Shown one piece after another: positions 1,345-26,820 of a stretch of DNA of 64,000 nucleotides; positions within the stretch are counted from its first letter, which is position 1, and each line of letters begins with the position of its first letter. The DNA lies in the NCBI GenBank assembly GCA_964187785.1, contig CAXLNC010000052.1, forward strand, positions 62,001 to 126,000. The letters are read 5' to 3'. The DNA comes from Amphiscolops sp. MND2022 (taxonomy: Eukaryota). The notes beneath the pieces are model-generated. The model made no database searches and was not told the DNA's origin. It saw only the letters and a program-made list of their open reading frames with translations. The position numbers were made by a program, and so were the translations under genes.

Positions 1345-3075
1345 TTGCGTACGATTGCTTCATTTGAGTCATGAAACTATTGACGCTTAATTCCTTACTG
1401 GTCGTGAGGTGGCTTTCTTGAAGACTCCCCAACATAGGGTTTAAAATAGAAACTATGGTGATGATGATAAGTGAGTGATGTCAAAACCGAAACTCTTAAA
1501 AACATAAATCTTAATACTCGAAGCTTCGATTCACATACGATTGCTTCATTTTAGTCATGAAACTTTCGGCGCTCAATTCCTTATTGGTCCTACGCGTGGA
1601 GAGGGGGGTCAGGTGGCTTTCTTGAGGACCTCCCCAAAATAGGGTTTAAAACAGAAACTATGGTGACGATAAATGAATGGTGTAAAAAGAGAAGCTCGGT
1701 TGTTCAAATCTTAAAACACGAAACTTCGATTGACTTATTGACTGCATCATTTTAGTCATGAAACTTTCCACATTCAATTCCTTATTGGTCGTACGCGTGG
1801 AGAGGGGGGTCAGGTGGCTTTCTTGAGGACCTCCCCAAAAGTTGGTTTAAAACATAAACTATATGGTGATGATAATAAGTGAGTGATGTTTAAAACCGAA
1901 ACTCTTAAAAACGTAAATCTCAAAACTCGAGGCTTCGATTGACATACGATTGCTTCATTTTAGTCATGAAACTTTCCACATTCAATTCCTTATTGGTCGT
2001 ACGCGTGGAGAGGGGGGTCAGGTGGCTTTCTTGAGGACCTCCCCACAAAAGGGTTGAAAATAGAAACTATGGTGATGATGATAAGTGAGTGATGTTAAAA
2101 CCGAAACTCTTAAAAACGTAAATCTTAAGACTCGAAGCTTCGATTGACTTATTGACTGCGTCATTTTAGTCATGAAACTTTCGGCGCTCAATTCCTTATT
2201 GGTCGTACGCGTGGAGAGGGGGGTCAGGTGGCTTTCTTTGAGGACCTAGTTGGTTTAAAACATAAACTATGGTGATGATAATAAGTGAGTGATGTTTAAA
2301 ACCGAAACTCTTAGAAACGTAAATCTCAAAACTCGAAGCTTCGATTGACATACGATTGCTTCACTTTAGTCATGAAACTATTGGCGCTCAATCCTTATTG
2401 GTCCTACACGTGGGGAGGGGGGGTCAGGTGGCTTTCTTGAGGACCTCCCCAAAATAGGGCTTAAAATAGAAACTATGGTATAAGTGCGTGATGTTTAAAA
2501 CCGAAACTCTTAAAAACGTAATTCTCAAAACTCGAAGCTCGATAGAGCTTCATTGCCTCGTTTTAGTCATGAAACTATTGGCGCTCAATTCCTTATTGGT
2601 CGTGCGCGTGGAGAGGGGGGTCAGGTGGCTTTCTTGAGGACCTCCCCAAAATAGGGCTTAACATGGAAACTATGGTGATGATAATAAGTGAGTGATGTTA
2701 AAACCGAAACTCTTAAAAAAAATCTTAAACTCGAAGCTCGATAGAGCTTCATTCTTCATTTTAGTCATGAAACTATTGGCGCTCAATTCCTTATTGGTCG
2801 TGCGCGTGGGGAGAGGGTTCAGGTGGCTTTTTTGAGGACCTCCCAGAAGTTGGTCTAAACATAAAACTACGTTAATGATGACAAGTTGTAGAGGAGAAAC
2901 TCGGTTGTTCAAATCTTAGAACATGAAACTTCGATAGACGTACGATTGCATCATTTCAGTCGGGAAACTTTCGACACTCAATTTCTTGTTGGTCGTGCGT
3001 GGCGAGGCGGGGTCAGGTGGCTTTCTCAAAATAGGATGTAAAAAAGAATCTATGGTGACCACAAATGAGCGAGAA
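1345..3075. repeat. Tandem array, ~200-bp unit, ~9 copies
   Basis: The anchor TTAGTCATGAAAC or a variant recurs at ~1364, 1551, 1752, 1960, 2166, 2366, 2563, 2761, 2956 (spacing 187-208). Units share TTCCTTATTGGTCGTACGCGTGGAGAGGGGGGTCAGGTGGCTTTCTTGAGGACC. The end units are the most diverged. Confidence 0.95.
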
Positions 3076-3726: not shown

Positions 3727-4149
3727 CCAAGCTTCAATTTGTGCTGGCCTCACTATTAGGCCAAGGGGACTTGAATTGCTTTCTTTTCCAAGCAGTTTAC
3801 TTAGATGACATCATGACAACATGCCACAAGATGCCTTGACCACTGGCCGATGCAGGCAGATGATGAAGCTCTATTTTATGAAGTCTTAATTGAGCTTACT
3901 TATGGTTTGGGGTCCTGCAAAAAGGGGGTCCGGACGTCGACTGGGCAAGAAAAATGGGCCAAAACGCTTTGTTTTCCGAGTGATGGGGGGGTTCCCGGGG
4001 TGGTTCTTTTTCGCCGACTGGGAATCTGACTGAGCAGAGCAGCAAAACGACCAGGTTAGGGAAACCTTAAAACTTTTTTTTGAATGAAAAAAGGCCTCAA
4101 ATCCCTATGGTTTTCTGCCTTTTTTAAAAATCTGAAATTTCGATTTAAA

Positions 4150-5880
4150 GCTGCCAAGTTGATTTAAAATTTTGAAGCTGTTTTTTAAATGGTGCTATGT
4201 TTCAAGGGGGTTCCGGGGGTTCCGCTTTAAAACCTGTAAATTGGATTGAAATGACATGAGCATGAACGATTTAAAACTCGGCATTTAAAAGCACTCTTTA
4301 AAAGAGGCTTGCCTTTTAAATTTTTAAAGTTGCAACCGTTTTAATCCATGTTTTAATTGTTAAATCAGACCCTCCAATTTCTGTGCTTAAAATGAGAAGC
4401 TCTCGCATTCAAGTTCTTACCAGAAAGTGGCTCAAAGAGGCTTCCGAGTCGCTTCCCAAGCGTCCTCTCAGAGAGGGCGTTTGGACAGGCAAGTTCTAGA
4501 CTAAACGTGCTGCTTAAGTTTAAATGAACCTTGCTGTGAAAAGGCTCTTTTTAAAACATGACATCATAAAGTTTGATTGAATTTAAAGCTGTCAAGGGGT
4601 CTAAAATTCGCAAGCTGTTTTCTTTTTTAATGGTGCTACGTTTCAGGGGGTGCCGGGGGGTCCGCTTTGAAACTGAATTGACTTGACATGAGCATGAGCG
4701 ATTTAAAGCTCGGCATTTAAAATGCATTCTTTTAAAAGAGGCTTGTCTTTTAAATTCTTCAAATTGCAACCATTTTAAATCCATGTTTTAAATCAGACCC
4801 TCCAATTTCTGTGTTTTGCTCAAAGAGGCTTCCGAGTGGCTTCCCAAGGGTCTTCTCAGAGAGGGAGTTTGGACAGGCAAGTTCTAAACGAAACGTGCTG
4901 TTCAAGTTTAAAGGGTTCCGCTTTAAAAGTGAATTGACTTGACATGAGCATGGACGATTTAAAGCTCGGCATTTGAAATGCACTCTTTGAAACGAGGCTT
5001 GCTTTTAAAATTTCAGAATTACAACCATTTAAATCCATGTCTTAAATCACACCCTCCAATTTATGTGCTTTAAAAGGAGAAGCTCTCGCATACAAGTTCT
5101 TACCAGAAAGTGGCTCAAAGAGGCTTCCAAGTGGCTTCCCAAGCGTCCTCTCAGAGAGGAGTTTGGACAGGCAAGTTCTAGACTAAACGTGCTGTTTAAG
5201 TTTAAATGAGCCTTGCTGTGAAAAGGCTCTTTTTAAAATATGACATCATAAAGTTTGATTGAATTTAAAGCTGTCAAGGTGTTTTAAAATTTGCAAGCTG
5301 TTTTCCTTTAATGGTGCTATGTTTCAAGGGGTGCCGAGGGGTTCCGCTTTAAAACTGAATTGACTCGACATGAGCATGGACGATGAAAAAGCTCGGCATT
5401 TAAAATGCACTCTTTTAAACGAGGCTTGCCTTTTAAAATTCAAATTGCAGCCATTTTAAATCCATGTTTTAAATCACACCTTCCAATTTCTGTGTTTTAA
5501 ACGGAGAAGTTCTCGCATTCAAGTTCTTACCAGAATGTGGCTCAAAGAGGCTTCCGAGTGGCCTCCCAAACGTCCTCGAGTTTTGGACAGGCAAGTTCAA
5601 AACGAAACGTGCTATTTAAGTTTAAGTGAGCAGTGCTGTGAAAAGGCTCCTTTTTAAGATATGTTTTGTTTTTTAATGGTGCTATGTTTGAAGGGGTGCC
5701 GGGGGGGGGGTTCCGCTTTAAAACTGAATTGACTTGACATGAGCATGGACCATTTAAAACTCGGCATTTAAAATGCACACTTTTAAACGAGGCTTGCCTT
5801 TTAAAATTTTAAATCGCGACCATTTCAAATCCATGTTTTAAATCACGCCCTGCAGTTACTGTGTTTTAATGAGAAGTTCT
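4150..5880. repeat. AT-rich tandem array, ~440-bp unit, ~4-5 copies with internal deletions
   Basis: GGTGCTATGTTTCAAGGGG..GGGTTCCGCTTTAAAA..GACATGAGCATG..CTCGGCATTTAAAA recurs at ~4192, 4632, 4915 (partial), 5315, 5678. Confidence 0.9.
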
Positions 5881-6444
5881 CGCACTCAAGTTCTTACCTG
5901 GGGGTGGCTCGGAGGTGGCCTTCGAGCGGTCCCGCTCAGACAGGGATCGGACAGGCAGTTTTAAAACCAAACATGCTCTTTAGAATCCAAATGAACCTTG
6001 CATTTAAATGGCTCAGAAAACATGAGATGAACCTTGCGTTTCAAAGGATCATGTGGTCCGACTGATCTAAATTGCAACCTTTTAAAAGGAAGCAGANNNN
6101 NNNNNNNNNNNNNNNNNNNNNNNNNNNNNNNNNNNNNNNNNNNNNNNNNNNNNNNNNNNNNNNNNNNNNNNNNNNNNNNNNNNNNNNNNNNNNNNNNNNN
6201 NNNNNNNNNNNNNNNNNNNNNNNNNNNNNNNNNNNNNNNNNNNNNNNNNNNNNNNNNNNNNNNNNNNNNNNNNNNNNNNNNNNNNNNNNNNNNNNNNNNN
6301 NNNNNNNNNNNNNNNNNNNNNNNNNNNNNNNNNNNNNNNNNNNNNNNNNNNNNNNNNNNNNNNNNNNNNNNNNNNNNNNNNNNNNGCTGCTCAGACTCGT
6401 GCATTTTTGATGGAGCCTGCGCGCACACACACGCACATCACTTG

Positions 6445-7804
6445 TCAGTCAAGACGGCAATTCAAAGTTTCTTTGCGGTGGCGGCGAATCTGGTACGTGT
6501 GCGGGAAGAAGCGCAACTGGTTAAGCTCGAAATTGGCATGGTCAAGGTCAGCTTTCAGCTTCTTGTTGGCTTTCTCTAACTTGGCAATCTTAGTGGCGAG
6601 TTCGAGTGGACTGGCGTACTCCACTCGACGCGCCTTTCCCCGCTCGACTCGCTTCATGACACCGGTGCGCTCCAGCAGCCTGACCTCATCTCTCAAGGCA
6701 GCCTTCCGCTTGTGCAAACACGTTGGGCCACCTTGCTGCTCGCTTGCCCACGGCCTTCCCGCAATCTTGGCATTGCCCCAACCTTGAAGTGCTGACTTGC
6801 GCTTTATTGCAAGCTGCAGCCTCACAATCCTTGTTGCAACAGTAACCACGACCGCGTCCATGCAGGGCCTCTCCGCATCCATCGCACACACGTCTGGTGC
6901 TGATCCTTGCAACACATGGGTCTCGCACGCACTTCTGTGGCTTCGGCAATGGCTTGCTCTGCCACCGCTTAATCTCTCGAGAGACCACAGTCTTGAGGCG
7001 GCTTGGGCGGACTGCTGGAAACTCGGCCCTGATAGTGCTGAGGATGGTTTTCTCGTTCCATCCTTCGTCATAACCGAGAATCTCTTGGATCCTCAAAGCA
7101 TAGTCTGCAAAGACTGGCGGCTCCTCAGTGTTTGCAGCCAAATCAGGATCAGACCTGACATCGTCGTTGTCAGCTCGAGAGACAGCGGCCTCTTGGTGTC
7201 GCCTCTCTATAGCCGCTGGCATTTCGTCTTCACCTGCGAGAGTGGGTGTATCTTAGGGGGGGACATGATCATTTGTGCGCTTTCTCATTGAAAGTCGATA
7301 AGATTTTCATAAGTCTTCCTCGGGTCACCTGCGGACACCGCTGAGTCTGAGCCCTTTGCTCGCACTCGCTGGACAAGGAGATCGTAGTGGTTCACTCCAT
7401 TGTAGAGAAGATGTATGCAATGAGCATCCTCAGAAACGCTAGGATGTGTTGCTTGATACTTACGCTGTAGCTTCGTGTCATGGACAATGACTTGCCTGTT
7501 GGTCATCTTGGAGAACGCCCACTATGACCATGTGGCCACCATACTTCTCTGGGTCTGCAGCGAGCTTACTAGCTTCTTCTGACCACAAGCGCCCATCATC
7601 ACCTTCGAGTGGTGCTTGATCCAACAGGTATTCAATGATAGCAGCACGCAGAGAAGCTGCCTGGCCAACTGTGGGAACGGCTTCTGAGAGAGCATGGAAA
7701 AGGCATAGTCCATCGCCTGGCACGCGGAGAGTATCCATGTGGCCTGGCACTTCTGCTTCAGGTTCTGCCATCCGAGCGTCAACCCTGGACGAAATTTGGG
7801 ACAT
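6445..7804 (-). pseudogene. Frameshifted copy of the OTU/zinc-finger gene (intron 7234-7328)
   Basis: Same sequence as 21680-23037 but with single extra C bases near 7519 and 6729 that split both exons. These could be real mutations or base-calling errors. Confidence 0.7.
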
Positions 7805-10800
7805 GTCAACAACTGCAACTGCAAGGAGGGGTGGGAGGTGCTTGAGCTAAGGGGCTGCGGCTGTCTCTAGAGTGGACTGATACATAGGAGAGATCTTCGC
7901 GTGTGCCGAGCCAAGGGAACATCAGCTCCACCATGAAGAAGGGAAGGCTGAACACCACACACACACAACTGCACAGGAACGGATATGTGCCGCACATGCG
8001 CTCACAATCTGCAGCAGATAGATGTGTGAAGGGTCTACAAATGGGAGGGATGACAAAACTGAAGGAGGGCGATGTCTACGCACACCGAATCTCCACAAGG
8101 AAGAGCTTCTTTCCCACTGACTCTTGAGAGGTTGGTGGTCAGACTGATCACACAGGCACAGGCTCTTCACAATGCAATGAATCCTAAGCATGCCGACGCG
8201 AAGTACATTAAGACGAACTCTTATCAGACACACCTGCCCTTCAGAATAGAGAATCTACTACATCGCGCTGGTCCCCATAAACAAGCCACCTCAGTATATG
8301 TCAAAACGGTGGAAAACAGACCCCGAAAACAAACAGACCCCCAAAACACAAGTTCAGCAAACGAGCTTCACCAGCAATCTCCCGAAAACATTTTCTTGCG
8401 ATGGTGTGGTTCAACCTCAACATGGCTAATGTAAATTTAATCTTGCACGTTTTGTCGCTGCTCAAGGATAGCTACATGTGCATGTACATGCATATATACT
8501 ATAAGTAAAGTCTCTATGTATATGAAGATACGTATATTACATATAGTATTATTATACACATATCGCTTGATTGGGATGTGTGTGTGGGGGGCGTCCAGAA
8601 ATGCAGCCGCCCACTTCCCAAGACAGATGCATCCAAAAGGTAAGGTGCACAGTGTGTGAGGGCCAATTTCTCAGAACTTTGCCTCACATCCAAGAATGAT
8701 TCTTTATAAAGGGAGGGGGGGGGGGTTATGGTTTTTTTTGCTCCAAGTGTCTTGAATTGTTTATAAGAAATCACCCCAGAAACAAACACATTACAACTGC
8801 CAAATACAATGCGTTTCTGTCCTTATTCTTGNNNNNNNNNNNNNNNNNNNNNNNNNNNNNNNNNNNNNNNNNNNNNNNNNNNNNNNNNNNNNNNNNNNNN
8901 NNNNNNNNNNNNNNNNNNNNNNNNNNNNNNNNNNNNNNNNNNNNNNNNNNNNNNNNNNNNNNNNNNNNNNNNNNNNNNNNNNNNNNNNNNNNNNNNNNNN
9001 NNNNCACCTTAGCAAAAGGAGGGGGGGGGGGGTTAACAGTAGGGTCTCGGGCACAAAACCAAAACGGCGTGCCTGATCCCTACGGGTAGCCACCCCGCCC
9101 CCCCCCGAGAGAATGAAAATGAAGATGAGGCGATGAATTGCACAAAAAGGAAAAAAGGAACAAAAAAGGAGACAAGGAGTAGAAAGGAGAAAATAAAGAG
9201 AGAGGGCAACAAAAAAAGGAGGCCTAAAAAGAGATATAGAGAGAGAAGGAGAGAATGAACAGAAGGAAAAAATGAGAAACAAAGGAACTTTTTCCTACAA
9301 ATTAACGAAAGTTAAACAACCAAACATTTTTCTCTGTAAGAGGTTTTTTCTTGATGCTCATGTTTTCAAATCGCGCGATTGGAGTTCTGAGGTTTTTTTT
9401 TTTAATGTTTGCATGTGTTCTTTTCAGAACCATCTCGTCCGGTATCGTCTTCCCTCCGCGCAAGAGCGACTTGGTCAAGGCCCCCCCTTAAGAACTCTTC
9501 TGCAATAAGAACCATGACCGGTTTTCTCCGCACTTTTGGACGAGCGATTTCATTTGAAAAACCATTTTTTATGAAATATTTCTCGAAAACGAGCTTTTCT
9601 TTGAAAAATCCTTTTTTTTAATGCTAGTTTTTTGTTTTTAAACTTTTTGGGGGGGACAATATTTTTAGTTTTCGATTTTTTGGTAACAAAATATTTGACA
9701 TTTTTGAAATATTTAAACTAGTTTTGAACAATATTTGAGAAATATTTTTTGAAAACTAATGTTCTGAAAAAAACAGAATAACAGGTCATGTTTCTTAGTG
9801 TAGGAGGGTTCTTAAGGGCGACCTGCATCATATCGATCTATCATAATCATCCCATTTTTAAGATAAAGTTGGTGGCCCCCTCACTCCGATCAGGGGGAGG
9901 GGGACGAAAATCCCAGCCCTTCAACAGGGATGTCCGGAAATCGGGGGCGCAGGATGATGGAGGATGAGAGGGGGGGGGGTCTGGGGGAGGGGTCTAGGTA
10001 GCAGAGCCAGAGGGAAGAACCTCAGCCTGCTTACGCAGCCCAACGCTACCCCCCTCCTTCCAAGGGCCCATGTTTACCATCCGCCCTCACATCGGAGGGG
10101 GGGGGGCACACCTTGAGGGGAGGGGGGTAGAGTTGCGGTAGCGGTAGGGAGCGGCTAAACTCCCCAAGCCCTTGCCCCCAGTTGTGTTGCTTGCCGCGTT
10201 CTCCGCCTACCTTTTTATGGTGGAGCCCGGCAAGCAATACAGGTGGGGTGGGGGTGCTATTGGGGGTTTTTGCCTGCCCCCGCCCCGCCTCTTCACTCAG
10301 GATTGCCGTGCCGCACCAAGAGCGAGAAGGTGGGGGAGGGGACAGGGAAGATCGTCGTAAGGCTTCCTTCTACCCCCCTTCCCCTGGTGCCGCCCCGGAG
10401 AAAAAGGCGCCAGGGGAAGGGCGGTGGAGGGGGGGGGTAATCAGTTCCCAATACCAAACTCGCCCTTACCCCTCCCTGTTCCCATTTTTGGCACTGACCT
10501 AAGCCCTAAACGGTCAGTGCCTGGACGGGAGTGGGCAGGAGTCCCCATATGACTGACAAAAATACGACTCCAAACAAACAAGCTTAGGACACTTGATTTC
10601 ATATTTAATGATCTGAGGCAAAAGGTCTTGCGATCAGCGGGGTGCAGATGCAGAATGAATACAAGAACATTAGAGAATACCCTTCTGTCCATTGATTTAT
10701 GATTTGGGCAAACCCTCCCAGCAATCAGCTTTCTGATGAAGACAAAATCACAAGAGTCAATGTGTCAGGGAATTGTTTTCAAAATATCAACTTTTCCACA

Positions 10801-11199
10801 TGCCGAAACTCAGTGAAACCAACAAAGGTTTCTGAACTAAATTGAAACGCTCTGGCAAAAGATGCGGTATGGAACCTCCATCGGAATCGATCAATTGATC
10901 TTATTTTTTTAGTGGAAAGGCTCTGGCAAAAGATGCGGTATGGAACCTCCATCGGAATCGATCAATCGATCTCATTTTTTGTGGTCCACCACTTGTATCT
11001 GTAACTCTCATTCTCCTTGTTCGTGGGCCTTAGTTTGGGAGTTGGAAAAACGAACGGTTCGAACCTGCATTTGTCGTTCCAAACAACTTGTCAGACACAT
11101 GCTTGTTTGCATATATTGTTTGGAGACAGAAGGTGCATATACAGCTGTAAGATTGTCAGCAAAAAAGCACTCTTTCACCTCAGCACCCTATTAAAAAGG

Positions 11200-13460
11200 T
11201 TCTTGGGTCGATGTTCTCAATTTTCATGTCCAAATTCTTGGTACATTCGATGTTGCGACTTTTGTGTGCACATTTATTTCCAAAAACTGACACCAAATCG
11301 ATGTTTTCGATCTTGTGTCCTAATTTCATTCTCAATGAAAGGGCAAGATCGAAGACATTGATTGGAACCACTTTTCCATTCGATGTTTTCGATTTGTGTC
11401 CTTGTTTCCCCAAAATTTGGTCCATTCGATGTTTTCGATTTTGTGTCCAACATTTTCATCAAAGGGCAAAATGGAGAGCACCGAGTAGACCCAATTTTTT
11501 GGGCAGAAAAATTGGGTCCATTCGATGCTTTCAATTCAAGAGACTTGGGTCCATTCGATCTTGTCATTTTTTTGTCCAAGATGTTTCTAAAAGGCAAAAT
11601 CGAAAAATTGAACAGGCCCAACATAAAAAATACTGCATTTTCACCCTCTTTTTGGACCCGAAAAAATGGAGAGCGGGTAGACCCAAATCTTTGGGCAGAA
11701 GACCTTGGGTCCATTCGATGCTTTCAATTCAAGAACCTGGGTCCATTCGATGTTTTCAATTTTGTGTCCAAAATGTTTCTAAATGCAAAATTCGAAAACA
11801 TCGAACGGACCCAACATCTCTTGAAAAAAGGGCAGCATTTCCCCCTCTTTGTATACCCAACAAAATGGAGAGCATCGAGTAGACCCAATTTATTGGGCAG
11901 AATAATTTGGGTCCATTCGATGCTTACAATTCAAGAAACTTGGGTCCATTCGATGTTGTCAATTTTTTGTCCAAATGTTGTCTAAAGGCAAAACCGAAAA
12001 CATCGAACGGACCCAATTTTTTTTACAAAAAAAGGCAGCATTTCCCCCTCTTTATGCCCGTTTGTGTCCCATTTCTGTCAGGACCCAAAAAAGTTTTTAC
12101 ACAATAACGGGCAGCATTTCCTCGTCAGGGTTTCCCCGGGCGACGTCGGGTGAGGGAGGGGGGCGGGCGGGGGCCAAATTCAAGTGGTGCATCTGATAAG
12201 AAGGGGGTCCCCGAAGCCCCCCTTGTTATCAGACGTTGCGCAGGCGACGTCTGATAAGAAAGCTGGCCGGCCAGCTCAGTTATCAGACGCTCCATGGCAT
12301 GCGTCGGGTAACTTCGCCCTCCGGCAGACTTTCTTATCAGGCGTTGCGCGGGCGATGTCTGATAAGAAGGGGGGGCTTCAGGGACCCCTTCTTATCAGAC
12401 GCACCGCCCGTTCCAAGAGCTGCGTCAGGGTTGCGCGGGGCGACGTCGGGTAAGGGGGGGCGTTCCCGCGCGACGTCGGGTAAGGGTGGGCGTTCCCCGT
12501 GCGACGTCGGGTCAGGGGAGGCGTTCCCCGCGCGACGCGACGTCGGGTAAGGGGGGGGGGTTGTTCCCGTGCGATGTCGGGTAAGAGGGGGCGTTCCTTG
12601 GCTCTGCTTCAGATTTTTTTTTTTTTTGGGGGGGGGTAGGTGTGTTTGGGGGGATTTGCGGCATAAAAGAGGGGGAAATGCTGCCCGTTTTTTTTGTGAA
12701 AAATATTTTGGGTCCATTCGATGTCGTCGATTTTGCCTTCAGAAACATTTGTGGGGCAAAAGTGTGTGACATCGAATGGGCCCAAGTTTCTTGACAGAAA
12801 TGAGACACAAAAATTGAAAGTATTCGGGTATAAAAGAGGGGGAATGCTGCCTGTTTTTTTTTTAGATTGGGCCCCGTTCGATGTTTTCGATTTTGAATTT
12901 GGAAAACATTTTGAACAAAAATTGACAACATCGAATGGACCTTTGTTTCTTGAATTGAAAGCATCGAGTAGACCCAATCTTTCTGCCCCCCCAAAATGGG
13001 TCTACTCGATGCTCTCCATTTTGTCGGGTATACAAAGAGGGGGAAATGCTGCCTCTTTTTTTTTCAAAACATTTTGGGTGCGTTCGATGTTGTTGATCTT
13101 GCCTTTAGAAACATTTTGGACAAACAATTGACATCGAAAGGACCCAAGCTGGAATGGACACAAAATCGAAAACATCGAATGGACCCAAGTGTTCTGCCCC
13201 AAAAGTGGGTCCAACAATGTTTTCGATCTTGCCCTTTCATAGACAAGGAAACGAAAGACACAAAAACGAAAACATCGATTTTGTATCACAACATCCAATG
13301 GACCAAGAATTTGGACACAAAATTGAGAGCATCGAATGGACCCAATGTTTCTGGGCAAGCTTGGGTCCATTTGATGTTCTTGATCTTGCCAGTTGATTAA
13401 AAAATTAGGACACACAATCGAAAGTAATTGCCTGAACATTTCATGTTTGGTATCGTGTTT
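11200..13460. repeat. Internal subrepeats of the foldback arms (~200-bp units built from GGGTCCATTCGATGTTTTCGATTTTGTGTCC and its inverse)
   Basis: The motif occurs many times in both orientations in 11200-12060 and 12660-13460. Confidence 0.9.
12061..12659. other. GC-rich spacer of the foldback: tandem TCTGATAAG..CTTATCAGA hairpins and CGACGTCGGGTAAGGGGG repeats
   Basis: Three inverted pairs in 12200-12400 and about six direct ~30-bp repeats in 12140-12600. Confidence 0.85.
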
Positions 13461-15554
13461 TCTAGCTAATTTGTGCATGCTAACAAACAAGTGGCTGACA
13501 AGTTGTTTGGAACTACAAATGCAAGTTCAATTTCCAACTCCCAATCAAAGAAATTCTCCAAAATCATAACAGACATTCAATTGTATTCTTAGAAAAGCAA
13601 GGACTATGAAATTACAGATACAAGTGGAGACCACAACAAGTTGAACAATTACTACTTTCAGATGGAGATTCAACACCGCATCAAATGCCAGAGCGTTTCA
13701 AATTTTTGGTATCCCTGATGTCATCTAGCCCTCCCCCCTCTTACCCTCCGACACAGTCTGTCCTTGTACACACACGTCACGGATAAGGATGTGGTGATGT
13801 GTTCCCCCCGCCCCTACCCCTTCCCCCGCTTTCATCCAAGGCACCGACCTTTGAGGGTTTTGGCCAGTGCCATGCGAACAGGGAGGGGTTAAGGGCGAGT
13901 TTGGTAATGGGAGCTGATTGCCCCTCCCTCCACCCCCCTTCCCCTGGCGCCTTTTCTCTTCGGGGCGGCACCAGAGGAAGGGGGGCCCTACGATGCCCTG
14001 ATCTTCCCCGCCCCCTCCCCCCACCTCTCCACATGCTCGCTCCTGGTGCGGCACGGCAATCCTGAGTGGAGAGGCGGAGGCGGGGGCGGGGGCAGAACCT
14101 AAAAAACCCCAATAGCACCTCCACACCGCCACCTGTATTGCTTGCCGGGCTCCACCATAAAAGGTTGGCGGAGAATGCGGCGAGCAACGCAGGTGGGGGA
14201 AGGGGTTTGGCCCGTTTGGGGAGTTTAGCCGTTCCCTACCCAACTCTACCCCCCTCCCCCCAAGGTATGCCCCCCTCGGATGTGAGGGCGGATGGTAAGC
14301 ACGGCCCTTGGAAGGAGGGGGGGTAGCGTTTGGCTAGGTAACGTAAGCAGGCCGAGGTTGTTGCCTCTGGCTCTGCTACCTAGACCCCTGTCAAAGGACA
14401 TCTGGAACTCAGGTGCAGGATGGCGAAGGCGGGGAGAAGGTCTGGGTGCCCACCATTCCGGTGGGCTGGGCTCGGGGCAGGTTTCGTTCCCGGGAGAGGG
14501 GTCTGGGTGCCCACCATTCTGGTGGGCTGGGATCGGGGCAGGTTTCGTCCCCTCCCCCGCCTGAGCGGATTGAGGGGACCACCAACCCTTATCTTCAAAA
14601 TGGTGCCTAAAAACCCTCCTACACAAAGAAACATGACCGGTTATTCTTTTTTTCAGAGCACTCGTTTTTTTTCAATCAAAAAAAATCCAACATTTCCAAA
14701 AACTGAATTATCAAAAAATCCTTTTTAGTAAAAAAGGTTTTGAAAATAATAGTTTTTCTTTCAAAAACTAGCTTCAAATATATTTTTTATTTTTGTCAAA
14801 AAAACAGTTTGTTTTGTTTTCAAAAAATATGTCTAATATTTCACCCTCTATTTTTCAAAATATTTTGAACAAATATTTTTCAACAAAAAAATCAAAAATC
14901 ATTTGTCCAAAGGAAACCAAAATCGCGAAGGAAACACCGGTCATAGTTCTTAGTTCAGAAGCGCTCTTGGGGGGGGGGGGGCTTGACCAAGTCGCTGTTG
15001 AGCGGAGGGAAGATGACACCCGATGCGATGATTCTTAAAATTGCACAGGCAAAATACCAAAAAAAAACCTCTGAACGCCAATCGCGCGATTCGAATTGCG
15101 ACCGAACATGAGCATCAAGAAAAACAACCTCTTACTGAGATAAGATCTTGGTTGTTTATCTTTAAATTATTATGAGAAATATTTTGTTGTGGAAACAGAA
15201 AAGATGAAGATGTTCCTCCTCCTCCTCCTCATCCTCCTCCTCCTCCTCTTTTTCCTTTGTTTATCTTTCCTCTTTTTGCTCATTCTCTCCTTCTCTCTCT
15301 CTCTCTCTTTTCTAGGCCCTTTTTTTTTGTTTCCTCCTCTCTTTTTTTCTCCTTTCTACTCCTTGTCTCCTTTTCTTTTCCTTTTTTTTCCTCATTTGCG
15401 ATTCATTGCCTCATCTTCATTCTCATTCTCTCAAGGGGGGGGGGTAAGGGGCTCAGGCACGCCGTTTTGGCTTTGTGCCCGAGACCCTCCTGTTAACCCC
15501 ACCCCCCCCCCTTGCTAAGGCGCCAAGGCCGCGACAACACACACGCGCGCGCGC

Positions 15555-15586
<32 letters not shown>

Positions 15587-16168
15587 GCAGAAACACGCGC
15601 ACACACACACACACAACACAGAAACAAACCCGAAACCCCCAAAATAAGGACAGAAACACATTGCATTTGGCAGCTGTAACGTGTTTGTTTCTGGGGTGTA
15701 TTTTTTGTAAACAACTCAAGACATTTGGAGCAAAAAACCACAACCCCCTCTTCCTTTAAAAAATCATTCCTGGATGTGAGGCAAAATTCTGAGAAATTGG
15801 CCTTCGCACACTGTGCAGCTACCTCCTGGATGCATCTGTCTTGGGAAGTGGTGGCTGCATTTCTGGAGTCCACATATACATCCCAACCAAGCGATACGTG
15901 CATAAATACACTATAGATAATTAATGTACATATATACATATATATATAGAGACTTTACTGATTACATATATATATATATGCATGTACATGCACATGTAGA
16001 TATCATTGAGCAACAACAAACGTGTAAGAATAAATTTACCTTAGCCGTCTTGAGGTTAAACCACACCATCGATCGCAAGAAAATGTATTCAGCTGGCGAT
16101 GCCCATTTGCTGTTGTGTTTGGGGGTCTGTTTGTTTTCGGGGTCTGTTTTCCACCGTTTTGACATTAT

Positions 16169-17762
16169 TCAGATCAGACTGTCTCTTTTCACGGGTTCCG
16201 AATCTTTAGGATAGAATGTCTGCTCCGCAAGCACAGATCAACTCTTCGGGCTGATGAGAGAGGTGAATATCTTCTCAAACAAGAGTGTGTTCTTCAGAAA
16301 AGGGGAACATTTGCCTTTGCAGAGACACCCGGCTACACCTCTTCTTGTCAAAGAGTGTATTCTTCACATCGGGGTGAACATTTGCCTTTGGAGAGATATC
16401 CGGCTACACCTCCTCTTCTCAAAGAAGACATCGCGCTGGTCCCCATAAACGAGCCACCTCGGTATTCAGATCAGACTGTCTCTTTTCACGGGTTCCGAAT
16501 CTTTAGGATAGAAAGTCTGCTCCGCAAGCACAGATCAACTCTTCGGGCTGATGAGAGAGGCGAATATCTTCTCAAACAAGAGCGTGTTCTTCAGAAAAGG
16601 GGAACATTTGCCTTTGCAGAGACACCCGGCTACACCTCTTCTTGTCAAAGAGTGTATTCTTCACATCGGGGGTGAACATGTGCCTTTGGAGAGATATCCG
16701 GCTACACCTCCTCTTCTCAAAGAAGAGCGTATTCTTCATAAAAGGGGTGAACATTTGCCTTTGTAGAGACATCCGGCTATCCTCCTCTTCTCAAAGAAAC
16801 GTGTATTCTTCATAAAAGGGGTGAACATTTGCCTTTGCTGAGACATCCGGCTACGCCTCTCTTCTCAAAGAAGAGTGCATTCTTCATAAAAGGGGTGAAC
16901 ATTTGTCTCTGCAGAGGACATCCGGCTGCACTTCCTCTTCTCGAAGAAGAGCGTTATTCTTCGTAAAAGGGGTGAATATTTGTCTCTGTAGAGACATCCG
17001 GCTAGACCTCTTCTTCTCAAAGAAGAGTGTCTTCTTCATAGAAGGGGTGAACATTTGTCTCTGCAGAGACATCCGGCCGCACCTCCTCTTCTCTGTACTC
17101 TTCGTAAAAGGGGTGAACACTTGCCTCTGTAGAGACACCCGGCTAGACCTCCTCTTCTCAAAGAAGACTGTATTCTTCATAAAAGGGGTGAACTTCTCAA
17201 AGAAGAGTGTATTCTTCATAAAAGGGGTGAACATTTGTCTCTGCAGAGACATCCGGCTGCACCTCCTCTTCTCAAAGAAGAGTGTATTCTTCATAAAAGG
17301 GTGTGAACATGTGCTTCTGTAGAGACATCCGGCTAGACCTCTTCTTCTCAAAGAAGAGTGTATTCTTCATAAAAGGGGGTGAACATTTGTCTCTGCAGAG
17401 ACATCGGCTGCAACTCCTCTTCTCAGGTAAGAGTGTATTCTTCATAAAAGGGGGTGAACATTTGACCTCCTCTTCTCAAAGAAAAGTGCATTCTTCATAA
17501 AAGGGTGTGAACATTTCTTCTCAAAGAAGAGTGTATTCTTCATAAAAGGGGTGAACATTTGCCTTTGTAGAGACATCCGGCTGCACCTCCTCTTCTCGAA
17601 GAAGAGTGTATTCTTCATAAAAGGGGTGTGAACATTTGTCTCTGCAGAGACATCCGGCTGCAACTCCTCTTCTCAGATGATAGTGTCTTCTTCATAAAAG
17701 GGGTGAACATTTGACCTCCTCTTCTCAAAGAAGAGTGTATTCTTCATAAAAGGGGTGAACAT
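16169..17762. repeat. 75-bp minisatellite preceded by a 300-bp higher-order duplication
   Basis: Unit AAGAGTGTATTCTTCATAAAAGGGGTGAACATTTGCCTTTGTAGAGACATCCGGCTACACCTCCTCTTCTCAAAG, many copies. 16169-16428 is repeated at 16466-16727. Confidence 0.95.
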
Positions 17763-18428
17763 TTGAGTAGAAATGACCTGAAACTTGTCCTGCCCCCGCG
17801 TTCTGCACTCTTTGATCGGCACATCCCCCGTGATCTGCATCTCCAAAAACGCGAAACGCTCTGGTGGGCTCTGGAAATGCCCGGCTAAAGCCGAAGCACT
17901 GTAAAAATAGGATTTTGACCGTTTTGAGGCTGAAGCCCTGGGACGCCCCACGGCGGCCTGAAAACGGCTCCGGACAGCATTCGACGATCAGCCGAACGGT
18001 CGCCGTTTGGGGGCCCGGCCGGAATCCCGTTTTTCCGGGATCAGCCTCCCTTCAGGATCAGTAGTAGTATATGGTACATAGAATATAGAAAAAAGATATA
18101 TTAAATAATGTAGTATAGAGTAAATAGTATGGTATATAGTGTATTGCACAGTATAGAGTGTATGACAGAGATGATCATACTGATGGTGAAGAGACTAATG
18201 ATGATGACGATGATGCTTAGGAGGAAGATTGTGGACGGGGGAAGAAGCGGGACCAAGAGAAGATGAGGGATATCGACAAGAAGATGCTGAAGACGAAAAA
18301 ACAATGAGAATGAGGACAAGCACGAAACACAGGAAGAAGTTCGCGAATAAAAGGCAGACTGATAACAAGAAGACACACATACTACCCAAAACAAGTAAGT
18401 GAAAAGAGCAAGGCGGAAAGATGAGGAC

Positions 18429-18466: not shown

Positions 18467-19409
18467 ATACAAAAGCGACAAAAAAAGAAACATCAGACGA
18501 CGATGATCTTGTGAGCAGACAGATAATGTTCTTGCACGCGGATGGAAAGGCAGAACAAGCCATCGGTCATTTTCAGGCTCTAAGCCTAAAACTGCTGAAT
18601 TTTTAGTTTTAAAATGACCGGTTGGGAAGCAATATTCTGAATATCAATACCACTTCTTTTCAAATAAGATGTCTTTTAAAAAGGAACAAATGAAACTGTC
18701 AATCTTTTAAAATGTTGAACCTGGCATTGCTTTTTTCAAATAATCGGTCTCGAGTGATGGTGTTTGTAATTGTCGGTCTCAAATCATTCCTGATCTTGCA
18801 GTTTAAAGAGTCTGTCTAAAATCTTTGCCTTGCTTGTTTTAAATCGTCGGGCAAACAAATCTGGCCTTAAAAAACATCAATTTTAAAGTGTACCATTTTA
18901 AAATGTATGTCAGTAAAACCGTGTCTTTTTAGAGACTCAGACTAACATCCTCGGTTTTTAAAAAGTCCTAAAGCCTTTTGCAAAGAGTCCGAGTAAGATC
19001 CTGGCCTTGCCCTTTTTTAAAGAATCGTCTGTTTAAAATGCTGCATCGCTATTGGCCTTGTTTAAAAAACAATGATGGCAAGAATATATGTCGGCAAACA
19101 AAATTTGGAAGCAGAGGTACGTAAGCTCAATTTTATAAGTCTATTGAGCTTACTTATGGTTTGGGGTCCTGCAAAAAGGGGGTTCCGGACGTCGACTGGG
19201 CAAGAAAAATGGGCCAAAACGCTTTGTTTTTCGAGTGATGGGGGGGTTCCCGGGGGTGGTTCTTTTTCGCCGACTGGGGAATCTGACTGAGCAGAGCAGC
19301 AAAACGACCAGGTTAGGGAAACCTTAAAACTTTTTTTTGAATGAAAAAAAGGCCTCAAATCCCTATGGTTTTCTGCCTTTTTTTAAAATCTGAAATTTCG
19401 ATTTAAAGC

Positions 19410-21120
19410 TGCCAAGTTGATTTAAAATTTTGAAGCTGTTTTTTAAATGGTGCTATGTTTCAAGGGGGTTCCGGGGGTTCCGCTTTAAAACCTGTAAATT
19501 GGATTGAAATGACATGAGCATGAACGATTTAAAACTCGGCATTTAAAAGCACTCTTTAAAAGAGGCTTGCCTTTTAAATTTTTAAAATTGCAACCGTTTT
19601 AAATCCATGTTTTAATTGTTAAATCAGACCCTCCAATTTCTGTGCTTAAAAATGAGAAGCTCTCGCATTCAAGTTCTTACCAGAAAGTGGCTCAAAGAGG
19701 CTTCCGAGTCGCTTCCCAAGCGTCCTCTCAGAGAGGGCGTTTGGACAGGCAAGTTCTAGACTAAACGTGCTGCTTAAGTTTAAATGAACCTTGCTGTGAA
19801 AAGGCTCTTTTTAAAACATGACATCATAAAGTTTGATTGAATTTAAAGCTGTCAAGGGGCTTAAAATTCGCAAGCTGTTTTCTTTTTAATGGTGCTATGT
19901 TTCAGGGGGTGCCGGGGGGGTCCGCTTTGAAACTGAATTGACTTGACATGAGCATGAGCGATTTAAAGCTCGGCATTTAAAATGCATTCTTTTAAAAGAG
20001 GCTTGTCTTTTAAATTCTTCAAATTGCAACCATTTTAAATCCATGTTTTAAATCAGACCCTCCAATTTCTGTGTTTTGCTCAAAGAGGCTTCCGAGTGGC
20101 TTCCCAAGGGTCTTCTCAGAGAGGGAGTTTGGACAGGCAAGTTCTAAACGAAACGTGCTGTTCAAGTTTAAAGGGTTCCGCTTTAAAAGTGAATTGACTT
20201 GACATGAGCATGGACGATTTAAAGCTCGGCATTTGAAATGCACTCTTTGAAACGAGGCTTGCTTTTAAAATTTCAGAATTACAACCATTTAAATCCATGT
20301 CTTAAATCACACCCTCCAATTTATGTGCTTTAAAAGGAGAAGCTCTCGCATACAAGTTCTTACCAGAAAGTGGCTCAAAGAGGCTTCCAAGTGGCTTCCC
20401 AAGCGTCCTCTCAGAGAGGGAGTTGCTGTTTAAGTTTAAATGAGCCTTGCTGTGAAAAGGCTCTTTTTAAAATATGACATCATAAAGTTTGATTGAATTT
20501 AAAGCTGTCAAGGTGTTTTAAAATTTGCAAGCTGTTTTCCTTTAATGGTGCTATGTTTCAAGGGGTGCCGAGGGGTTCCGCTTTAAAACTGAATTGACTC
20601 GACATGAGCATGGATGATGAAAAAGCTCGGCATTTAAAATGCACTCTTTTAAACGAGGCTTGCCTTTTAAAATTCAAATTGCAGCCATTTTAAATCCATG
20701 TTTTAAATCACACCTTCCAATTTCTGTGTTTTAAACGGAGAAGTTCTCGCATTCAAGTTCTTACCAGAATGTGGCTCAAAGAGGCTTCCGAGTGGCCTCC
20801 CAAACGTCCTCGAGTTTGGACAGGCAAGTTCAAAACGAAACGTGCTATTTAAGTTTAAGTGAGCAGTGCTGTGAAAAGGCTCCTTTTTAAGATATGTTTT
20901 GTTTTTTAATGGTGCTATGTTTGAAGGGGTGCCGGGGGGGGGGTTCCGCTTTAAAACTGAATTGACTTGACATGAGCATGGACCATTTAAAACTCGGCAT
21001 TTAAAATGCACACTTTTAAACGAGGCTTGCCTTTTAAAATTTTAAATCGCGACCATTTCAAATCCATGTTTTAAATCACGCCCTGCAGTTACTGTGTTTT
21101 AAATGAGAAGTTCTCGCACT
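19410..21120. repeat. Second copy of the ~440-bp AT-rich array
   Basis: Same units as 4150-5880, inside duplication copy 2. Confidence 0.9.
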
Positions 21121-21679
21121 CAAGTTCTTACCTGGGGGTGGCTCGGAGGTGGCCTTCGAGCGGTCCCGCTCAGACAGGGAATCGGACAGGCAGTTTTAAA
21201 ACCAAACATGCTCTTTAGAATCCAAATGAACCTTGCATTTAAATGGCTCAGAAAACATGAGATGAACCTTGCGTTTCAAAGGATCATGTGGTCCGACTGA
21301 TCTAAATTGCAACCTTTTAAAAGGAAGCAGANNNNNNNNNNNNNNNNNNNNNNNNNNNNNNNNNNNNNNNNNNNNNNNNNNNNNNNNNNNNNNNNNNNNN
21401 NNNNNNNNNNNNNNNNNNNNNNNNNNNNNNNNNNNNNNNNNNNNNNNNNNNNNNNNNNNNNNNNNNNNNNNNNNNNNNNNNNNNNNNNNNNNNNNNNNNN
21501 NNNNNNNNNNNNNNNNNNNNNNNNNNNNNNNNNNNNNNNNNNNNNNNNNNNNNNNNNNNNNNNNNNNNNNNNNNNNNNNNNNNNNNNNNNNNNNNNNNNN
21601 NNNNNNNNNNNNNNNNNNNNGCTGCTCAGACTCGTGCATTTTTGATGGAGCCTGCGCGCACACACACGCACATCACTTG

Positions 21680-23037
21680 TCAGTCAAGACGGCAATTCAA
21701 AGTTTCTTTGCGGTGGCGGCGAATCTGGTACGTGTGCGGGAAGAAGCGCAACTGGTTAAGCTCGAAATTGGCATGGTCAAGGTCAGCTTTCAGCTTCTTG
21801 TTGGCTTTCTCTAACTTGGCAATCTTAGTGGCGAGTTCGAGTGGACTGGCGTACTCCACTCGACGCGCCTTTCCCCGCTCGACTCGCTTCATGACACCGG
21901 TGCGCTCCAGCAGCCTGACCTCATCTCTCAAGGCAGCCTTCCGCTTGTGCAAACACGTTGGGCACCTTGCTGCTCGCTTGCCCACGGCCTTCCCGCAATC
22001 TTGGCATTGCCCCAACCTTGAAGTGCTGACTTGCGCTTTATTGCAAGCTGCAGCCTCACAATCCTTGTTGCAACAGTAACCACGACCGCGTCCATGCAGG
22101 GCCTCTCCGCATCCATCGCACACACGTCTGGTGCTGATCCTTGCAGCACATGGGTCTCGCACGCACTTCTGTGGCTTCGGCAATGGCTTGCTCTGCCACC
22201 GCTTAATCTCTCGAGAGACCACAGTCTTGAGGCGGCTTGGGCGGACTGCTGGAAACTCGGCCCTGATAGTGCTGAGGATGGTTTTCTCGTTCCATCCTTC
22301 GTCATAACCGAGAATCTCTTGGATCCTCAAAGTATAGTCTGCAAAGACTGGCGGCTCCTCAGTGTTTGCAGCCAAATCAGGATCAGACCTGACATCGTCG
22401 TTGTCAGCTCGAGAGACAGCGGCCTCTTGGTGTCGCCTCTCTATAGCCGCTGGCATTTCGTCTTCACCTGCGAGAGTGGGTGTATCTTAGGGGGGGACAT
22501 GATCATTTGTGCGCTTTCTCATTGAAAGTCGATAAGATTTTCATAAGTCTTCCTCGGGTCACCTGCGGACACCGCTGAGTCTGAGCCCTTTGCTCGCACT
22601 CGCTGGACAAGGAGATCGTAGTGGTTCACTCCATTGTAGAGAAGATGTATGCAATGAGCATCCTCAGAAACGCTAGGATGCGTTGCTTGATACTTACGCT
22701 GTAGCTTCGTGTCATGGACAATGACTTGCCTGTTGGTCATCTTGGAGAACGCCACTATTACCATGTGGCCACCATACTTCTCTGGGTCTGCAGCGAGCTT
22801 ACTAGCTTCTTCTGACCACAAGCGCCCATCATCACCTTCGAGTGGTGCTTGATCCAACAGGTATTCAATGATAGCAGCACGCAGAGAAGCTGCCTGGCCA
22901 ACTGTGGGAACGGCTTCTGAGAGAGCATGGAAAAGGCATAGTCCATCGCCTGGCACGCGGAGAGTATCCATGTGGCCTGGCACTTCTGCTTCAGGTTCTG
23001 CCATCCGAGCGTCAACCCTGGACGAAATTTGGGACAT
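21680..23037 (-). CDS. Spliced gene: N-terminal OTU-like cysteine protease, then CxxC zinc-finger/ribbon motifs and a coiled coil. Exons 23037-22563 and 22467-21680; may continue into the N run.
   Basis: OTU catalytic motifs VPGDGLCLFHAL (D-x-x-C) and HLLYNGVNHYDLL (His). A 95-nt GT-AG intron (22468-22562, phase 1) joins ...SAVSA-G-EDEMPAA in frame. Downstream motifs are CDGC, CCNKDC, CQDC..CPTC and LATKIAKLEKANKKLKADL. Confidence 0.8.
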
Positions 23038-23527
23038 GTCAACAACTGCAACTGCAAGGAGGGGTGGGAGGTGCTTGAGCTAAGGGGCTGCGGCTGTCTC
23101 TAGAGTGGACTGATACATAGGAGAGATCTTCGCGTGTGCCGAGCCAAGGGAACATCAGCTCCACCATGAAGAAGGGAAGGCTGAACACCACACACACACA
23201 ACTGCACAGGAACGGATATGTGCAGCACATGCGCTCACAATCTGCAGCAGATAGATGTGTGAAGGGTCTACAAATGGGAGGGATGACAAAACTGAAGGAG
23301 GGCGATGTCTACGCACACCGAATCTCCACAAGGAAGAGCTTCTTTCCCACTGACTCTTGAGAGGTTGGTGGTCAGACTGATCACACAGGCACAGGCTCTT
23401 CACAATGCAATGAATCCTAAGCATGCCGACGCGAAGTACATTAAGACGAACTCTTATCAGACACACCTGCCCTTCAGAATAGAGCTACTACATCGCGCTG
23501 GTCCCCATAAACAAGCCACCTCAGTAT

Positions 23528-26500: not shown

Positions 26501-26620
26501 CTCCTTGTTCGTGGGCCTTAGTTTGGGAGTTGGAAAAACGAACGGTTCGAACCTGCATTTGTCGTTCCAAACAACTTGTCAGACACATGCTTGTTTGCAT
26601 ATATTGTTTGGAGACAGAAG
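23528..26620. mobile_element. Left arm of the foldback element carried in duplication copy 2
   Basis: Same terminus and same CAGTAT flank as 8298, so it was copied with the duplication rather than inserted independently. Confidence 0.85.
25337..25660. mobile_element. MITE with 36-bp TIRs, present only in duplication copy 2
   Basis: GCGTGAAACAGGTACAATGTGGCAAATTGGCGTTCT (25339) and its near-perfect inverse ending at 25654. Flanked by the direct repeat GGGGAGGGGGGTAG, which is single in copy 1 (~10117). Confidence 0.9.
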
Positions 26621-26820
26621 NNNNNNNNNNNNNNNNNNNNNNNNNNNNNNNNNNNNNNNNNNNNNNNNNNNNNNNNNNNNNNNNNNNNNNNNNNNNNNNN
26701 NNNNNNNNNNNNNNNNNNNNNNNNNNNNNNNNNNNNNNNNNNNNNNNNNNNNNNNNNNNNNNNNNNNNNNNNNNNNNNNNNNNNNNNNNNNNNNNNNNNN
26801 NNNNNNNNNNNNNNNNNNNN

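Follow-up and report, generated by a model that had tools for sequence, protein, structure and literature searches.

Positions 8298-16165 of a 64,000-nucleotide stretch of the Amphiscolops sp. MND2022 assembly (the window; positions 62001-126000 of contig C65, from a 1.07-Gb assembly) hold one long palindrome flanked by a 3-bp target-site duplication (TSD), and a second palindrome with homologous ends lies on another small contig, C1253. We consider it likely, with a probability of about 0.8, that these are two copies of one low-copy family, made up of foldback-type DNA transposons that lack genes, are palindromic throughout, insert at a 3-bp staggered cut and are moved in trans by a transposase encoded in neither copy. 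The family moved more than once. We observe two independent insertions, each with precise ends and empty sites.

The window element opens with ATGTCAAAAC and closes with GTTTTGACAT, with TAT on either side. Its features and those of its immediate surroundings are as follows, in window coordinates.

8295-8297, no strand: left copy of the TSD, TAT; the paralogous unit without the insertion holds a lone TAT.
8298-8345, plus strand: left terminal inverted repeat (TIR), 48 bp, beginning ATGTCAAAACGGTGG; 100% complementary to the right end and conserved in all four ends of both copies.
8314-8348, plus strand: a direct repeat of 17 bp, present twice, whose core AAACAGACCCC stands at element positions 17 and 34 (repeat scan).
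8298-8440, plus strand: terminal region of ~140 bp that can be aligned with the C1253 copy at 77-78% identity.
8832-9004, no strand: assembly gap of 173 N (estimated) within the left arm, both flanks colinear with the right arm.
8298-12290, plus strand: left palindrome arm, containing a 202-bp tandem repeat (11467-12053) and a 71-bp repeat (10844-10980).
12186-12405, no strand: axis, an imperfect hairpin with arms 12186-12290 / 12301-12405, a loop of ~10 nt and five TGATAAG iterons.
12301-16165, minus strand: right palindrome arm, a ~78% identical mirror of the left arm.
16118-16165, minus strand: right TIR, 48 bp, ending GTTTTGACAT.
16166-16168, no strand: right copy of the TSD, TAT.
8260-8297, plus strand: left 38 bp of the interrupted 297-bp host unit, the remainder of which is 16169-16427.
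16428-16726, plus strand: adjoining host unit without insertion, the paralogous empty site, with a single TAT at 16463-16465.
23528-26620, plus strand: partial duplicate of the same insertion, comprising the left end and ~3 kb of the left arm and ending at a gap (26621-26820).

When the right half is reverse-complemented and aligned to the left half, 12 colinear blocks emerge, running from the tips to the axis at ~12295. The aligned columns between the arms amount to 2,874/~3,900, with a mean identity of 78%, and the outermost 48 nt (8298-8345 / 16118-16165) form a perfect inverted repeat. An initial annotation, made from the letters of the window alone, had described 8298-16165 as one diverged palindrome with exact ends and TAT on both sides, and the alignment bears this out. 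The length of 7.87 kb given there holds at 7,868 bp, a figure that takes in the 173-N gap at its estimated size. The blocks flanking this gap, 8298-8827 and 9007-9539, pair in order with 16165-15643 and 15520-14917 of the right arm, so that the left arm continues across it. The right-arm spacer opposite the gap is 122 bp, and the estimate of the gap is plausibly right to within ~60 bp.

The element occupies the first of two 297-bp tandem host units, after which comes a 75-bp satellite. When the element and one TAT are deleted, the flanks align without a gap to the adjoining unit 16428-16726, with 36/38 identical positions on the left and 256/261 on the right. The uninterrupted target that the initial annotation had recognized in the neighbouring unit is thus confirmed. 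We also considered a TSD of 2 bp (TA), 4 bp or 6 bp. These are rejected, for symmetric ends together with a direct repeat are found in both copies only at 3 bp. A 6-bp reading, the length typical of Polinton/Maverick derivatives, gives no direct repeat, and the ATGT ends are not of the Maverick type. A composite of two complete elements is likewise rejected, as the subterminal motif is confined to the outer ends.

Searched against the whole assembly, the left end matches at two further places, one at window 23528 and one at C1253:6295-17791. The C1253 element is 11.5 kb long, has the ends ATGTGAGAAC...GTTCTCACAT, and carries GTT on both sides. It is a palindrome from tip to axis as well, with arms 72% identical over a 4.8 kb alignment, and it sits in the reverse-transcriptase region of a decayed copia-type retroelement whose paralogs carry rve and RVT_2 domains. 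Eight uninterrupted paralogs of this host align gap-free over the junction and hold one GTT, which confirms the 3-bp scar. With the one paralog for the window copy, the scar is seen at nine empty sites in all. Homologous ends at a second locus with a different TSD (TAT vs GTT) mean that the family inserted at least twice. The initial annotation had let its case for a giant non-autonomous DNA transposon depend on whether these termini recur elsewhere in the genome beside 3-bp TSDs of other sequence; the C1253 copy, with its GTT and eight empty sites, is such a case, and together with the empty sites it supports that reading.

The copia-type family that hosts the C1253 copy, in which rve stands before RVT_2, has at least 10 diverged paralogs at 66-77% identity. 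These are found on C624, C191, C1126, C910, C821, C711, C1506, C1334, C61, C1581 and C620, all of them small unplaced contigs.

The palindrome could in principle be non-mobile, either as a local inverted duplication formed by break-induced fold-back or as a fold-back of the assembly, with the flanking TAT there by coincidence. Fold-back repair can make palindromes of this size, and a 3-bp match occurs by chance at 1/64. On the other hand, homologous ends stand at an unrelated locus with another 3-bp TSD, and the empty sites, in one paralog and in eight, are exact to the base. The probable source sample (X1, X2; depth ~2) supplies contigs that agree letter for letter with many parts of the element, one of them spanning the axis at 12164-12355; the X1, X2 and X3 data are contigs rather than reads and show presence only. 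An assembly fold-back would yield identical arms, whereas these arms are diverged. Taken together, the diverged arms and the exact low-depth contigs across the axis exclude an assembly fold-back, in agreement with the initial annotation, and we regard a non-mobile origin of any kind as barely credible. In a related organism (run X3), 7-9 distinct contigs show 90-95% likeness over the subterminal segment 16049-16117, which indicates that the family ends are probably multi-copy in that organism.

The other place returned by the search, 23528-26620, was examined as a candidate independent insertion and rejected, since it has the same left flank and the same TAT and lies within a 15.26-kb direct duplication. 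This duplication (3866-11132 / 19123-26620) has a period of 15.26 kb and an identity of 97-99%, and it carries the left flank and left arm of the element. Both duplication copies hold a 289-N gap at an equal relative place (6097-6385 and 21332-21620), and the gap internal to the element is paired in both (8832-9004 and 24060-24210). Since the gap-free segment 9005-21331 joins both copies, the duplication exists at the level of the contig; its second copy stops at a 200-N gap starting at 26621.

Several differences and repeats are noticed in this neighbourhood. The duplicate copy contains a miniature inverted-repeat transposable element (MITE) of ~320 bp at window ~25320-25674, which is missing from the first copy at 10130 and so arrived later than the duplication. 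The MITE has a TIR beginning GCGTGAAACAGGTACAATGTGG, and on its two sides stands an imperfect direct repeat, unusually long at ~17 bp (TGAGGGGAGGGGGGTAG / TACGGGGAGGGGGGTAG). The duplicate also lacks 31 bp found at ~10175-10205 in the first copy. Directly beyond the host units, the 75-bp satellite extends over 16567-17766 in ~16 units with higher-order periods of 114 and 249; the depth of run X3 is very high at the satellite, reaching 17,739 in the bin 16236-16422. A separate tandem array of 201/406 bp lies at window 1407-3026.

Comparing the window copy with the C1253 copy, we notice that hardly any sequence aligns outside the ends and the axis iterons, the exception being a few short modules of the arms, which also occur elsewhere in the genome. 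Two modules are common to both copies and specific to the family, namely the terminal 50-140 bp and the iteron cluster at the axis. The shared terminal module consists of ATGTNANAACGGTGG and two 17-bp direct repeats. All four ends of the two elements align, the outermost letters being ATGTC / ATGTG. The terminal consensus reads ATGT-N-A-N-AACGGTGG, followed by the two 17-bp direct repeats (core AAACAGACCCC) and then by more conserved blocks.

The conservation of the ends is sharply bounded. In both elements the first 50 bp of the left and right ends are identical at 49/50 positions, and the identity falls at once to 68-82% inside. Given the identity of the arms, the chance of such ends is ~7e-5 and 1.5e-6 for the two elements. 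A dead copy has no reason to protect its ends, and hence the arms appear to have diverged during selection for mobility. We infer that both copies were already imperfect palindromes on landing, with arms ~20-28% diverged. This argument rests mainly on the sharp step of conservation at the ends. The neighbouring host unit, 98% identical to the interrupted unit, points weakly in the same direction.

At the axis, both copies carry clustered iterons of the form ~YYTGATAAGRRGGG, each preceded by a small GC-rich hairpin. The window copy has five TGATAAG within ~100 bp of the axis, at 12194, 12252 and 12360 on the plus strand and at 12333-12339 and 12391-12397 on the minus strand. The C1253 copy has nine, all within its central 900 bp, with none elsewhere on its 23.8-kb contig. 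The strict iteron pattern is found 3 times in the window vs 0.05 expected, and among all loci retrieved it is present at the two axes only. The axis regions fold as strong hairpins (DNA fold z = -12.6 for 12186-12405), as is expected of any palindrome centre. In the assembly, the axis core matches itself only, and its read depth is low, which gives no support to the idea that it is the core of an abundant, shared MITE.

How might such an element move and keep its form? We propose that a transposase acting in trans would bind and cut at the terminal 50 bp, would make 3-bp staggered cuts and would be of the DDE cut-and-paste kind. Selection for mobility may have retained the ends while the remaining arm DNA drifted. 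The axis iterons may form a second cis-acting site, at which an accessory protein might act or the palindrome might be turned around or regenerated. Within an element the two arms resemble each other (78% and 72% over kilobases) much more closely than they resemble the arms of the other element, yet the type of axis is shared. This suggests that the arms are kept similar by conversion, or that one arm is re-copied from the other via an axial hairpin.

The second possibility can be extended into an explanation of its own. In it, the copies belong to an undescribed lineage with ATGT ends and a sequence-unspecific 3-bp TSD, whose palindrome is restored when one arm is copied through a hairpin (snap-back) with its turning point at the axis iterons. 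The arms, 78% / 72% alike within elements, align between elements only at the ends, the iterons and a few modules, and both elements have the same kind of axis, a pattern that calls for concerted evolution between the arms, or else for one arm to be re-copied time and again. An introner-like class of dinoflagellates, with a 3-nt TSD and unknown machinery, lends it some further plausibility (10.1101/2020.10.14.339549). However, no enzyme is known, gene conversion between the arms gives the same pattern, and the two copies, with arms now 22-28% diverged, display no recent regeneration event. We hold this explanation to be rather unlikely. A fuller version, in which both copies are the sole assembled members of an undescribed, possibly dinoflagellate, cut-and-paste lineage whose palindromes are made obligatory by periodic re-copying of the arms through a hairpin at the TGATAAG iterons of the axis, seems to us unlikely as well.

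Neither copy shows coding capacity. No Pfam domain was found in 108 stop-to-stop open reading frames (ORFs) of >=75 aa from both elements, and no Rfam family and no tRNA were found in the elements. The initial annotation had called the window element non-coding and free of a transposase ORF, and the profile search upholds this. Searches of metagenome collections gave one chance match on a GC-rich contig, and those of viral collections gave none. The profile of the Zator-type (ISAzo13/TP36-like, PF07592) transposase had no match in the whole assembly, but the control genomes were blank too.

We found no more family members in the assembly with the terminal 27-mer (<=3 mismatches), the double subterminal motif or BLAST with the ends of both elements. 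Four other loci, C616:14447-15180, C998:8527-8800, C1677:54794-56535 and C789:42099-42405, have modules that are 70-85% identical to parts of the arms in both elements. In the elements these modules are located 1.6-2.2 kb from the ends and are mirrored in both arms; no ATGT-type terminus was found within reach of the four loci. They could be pieces of further family members, or represent an older small repeat captured by an ancestral arm.

Several points weigh against our preferred reading of a trans-mobilized, palindromic transposon family. An autonomous partner with the same termini, which the initial annotation had suggested looking for, did not emerge from the assembly by the 27-mer (<=3 mismatches), the double motif or BLAST with the ends, and this compartment may not be fully assembled. 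The TIR and TSD are the sole grounds for proposing a DDE cut-and-paste mechanism, and no transposase was found. The generality of the TSD and the target preference rest on n=2 independent insertions. The iterons at the axis could have arisen by local expansion of a short ancestral repeat and have no present function. Meanwhile, tandem repeats are homogenized by concerted evolution, which makes the dating from the 98% identical host unit weak.

Random chromosome regions of the assembly have 36-38% GC and a ratio of observed to expected CpG (o/e) of 0.9-1.1. These values are 44-48% and 0.4-0.7 in the window, in C1253 and in further small contigs that have repeats in common with them. The MITE-like repeats of the window are found mostly on small contigs, with two matches on chromosome scaffolds of the same odd composition. 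The 21-nt dinoflagellate spliced leader occurs in the assembly once exactly and twice with one mismatch (C1301:15170-15190, C131:1988-2008 and C1910:13982-14002, all small contigs), and a reversed control had no match. These matches argue that dinoflagellate-type DNA is present among the small contigs; within the window no relic of the spliced leader was found. The element thus probably lives in a GC-richer, CpG-depleted compartment, possibly that of a dinoflagellate symbiont of an acoel worm.

In terms of composition, C4:64.47 Mb and C11:51.95 Mb, on chromosome scaffolds, belong to the GC-richer, CpG-depleted class. C900:1-7000 is a 7-kb block nearly without CpG (o/e 0.00-0.25), after which the ratio turns sharply to 0.8-1.0. 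The window segment 51460-64000 is a CpG-free block (o/e 0.01) resembling it.

New here are the second copy, the demonstration of a 3-bp scar in nine empty sites, the iterons conserved at the axis, and the evidence for drift of the arms with the ends kept. How and why foldback transposons keep their palindromic shape is not understood. That only the 50-bp ends and the axis iterons are kept, while kilobases of arm drift yet stay mirror-symmetric, suggests a further cis-acting site at the axis and some process that maintains or renews the palindrome. A transposase for ATGT ends with a non-specific 3-bp TSD, once found, may prove to be a new branch in the classification of transposons. Were the contig to stem from a dinoflagellate symbiont, the element would add to the very thin catalogue of DNA transposons there. 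As an orphan family of two non-coding copies, it is worth recording but is not yet a discovery.

With respect to known transposons, both copies have the exact, reproducible TIR ends and the fixed-length TSD with empty sites that characterize non-autonomous TIR transposons; no transposase-coding partner was found in the assembly or in the metagenome and viral collections scanned. They may belong to a described superfamily with a 3-bp TSD and merely have atypical-looking ends. The groups in question are CACTA/Mirage/Chapaev (CMC), the Tc4/Zator branches of IS630-Tc1-mariner, PIF/Harbinger-PHIS and AcademX. Orphan non-autonomous families usually join a known superfamily once a partner is found, and we give this explanation somewhat less than even odds.

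The ends of CACTA and other CMC elements begin with CAC(TA), in contrast to the ATGTC / ATGTG of both copies. CMC elements have no strict target sequence and can be large, with subterminal repeats and large non-autonomous derivatives. Their TSD range of 2-4 bp, as cited in PMC4482050, fits the 3 bp found here, and all the candidate groups are reported with TSDs of 3 bp or 2-4 bp (PMC10045372, PMC4482050, PMC11071193). PHIS groups use the sequence-specific 3-bp TSDs TWA, ANT, CWG and TNA and have TIRs of 11-61 bp beginning GG/AG/GGG (PMC4482050). PIF/Harbinger-PHIS, including Pangu, NuwaI and NuwaII, has in common with our copies a 3-bp TSD and non-autonomous derivatives mobilized in trans. However, TAT and GTT, with their complements ATA and AAC, fit none of the four PHIS targets, and the TIRs here start with ATGT.

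Tc4 is ~1.6 kb in length, vs 7.9-11.5 kb here. This element of C. elegans (TcMar-Tc4, with a DDD transposase) is itself a foldback with a 3-bp TSD, a combination that both copies share; it inserts at C|TNA|G, duplicating TNA, and it is known only from ecdysozoans (PMC11071193). The targets G|TAT|T and C|GTT|G do not follow the Tc4 rule. Zator has a TSD of 3 bp and AcademX one of 3-4 bp (PMC10045372). Both agree with the 3 bp here, the comparison being one of TSD length. AcademX elements are large and encode a transposase and an XPG-type nuclease; both copies are without genes that could be set beside these. The blank ISAzo13/Zator-type profile says little about Zator, as controls were blank too. 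The initial annotation had matched the ends and TSD to no canonical superfamily, and the TSDs and first TIR bases indeed fall outside the published PIF/PHIS and Tc4 patterns and that of CACTA. The superfamily is left unassigned as an absence of match, set against PIF/PHIS, Tc4 and CACTA only, and Zator and AcademX are still candidates.

Among dinoflagellates, the lineage from which this contig may come, class 9 of the introner-like elements of Polarella glacialis (10.1101/2020.10.14.339549) resembles the family in its TIRs, 3-nt TSD and unknown transposase. By description, class 9 elements are short, abundant and intron-forming, whereas those described here are 8-11 kb long, present in two copies and located outside genes.

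The foldback shape arises in several unrelated superfamilies, FB and Tm1 being associated with MULE/Phantom transposases and Galileo with P, all with TSDs of 7-10 bp (PMC3169594). Both copies differ from FB, Galileo and Tm1 (Tm1: 9 bp) in their 3-bp TSD. Their arms, at 3.9-5.7 kb, are mostly non-repetitive and strongly diverged, and no MULE or P transposase is linked to them. In structure, however, they conform to the foldback type, since each copy has arms that stay colinear from the tip up to the axis. As in Drosophila FB, Galileo, Tm1 and Tetris, where most copies are non-coding, nearly the whole element consists of two long inverted arms with internal tandem repeats, and the two arms of an element are non-identical and of unequal length (PMC3169594).

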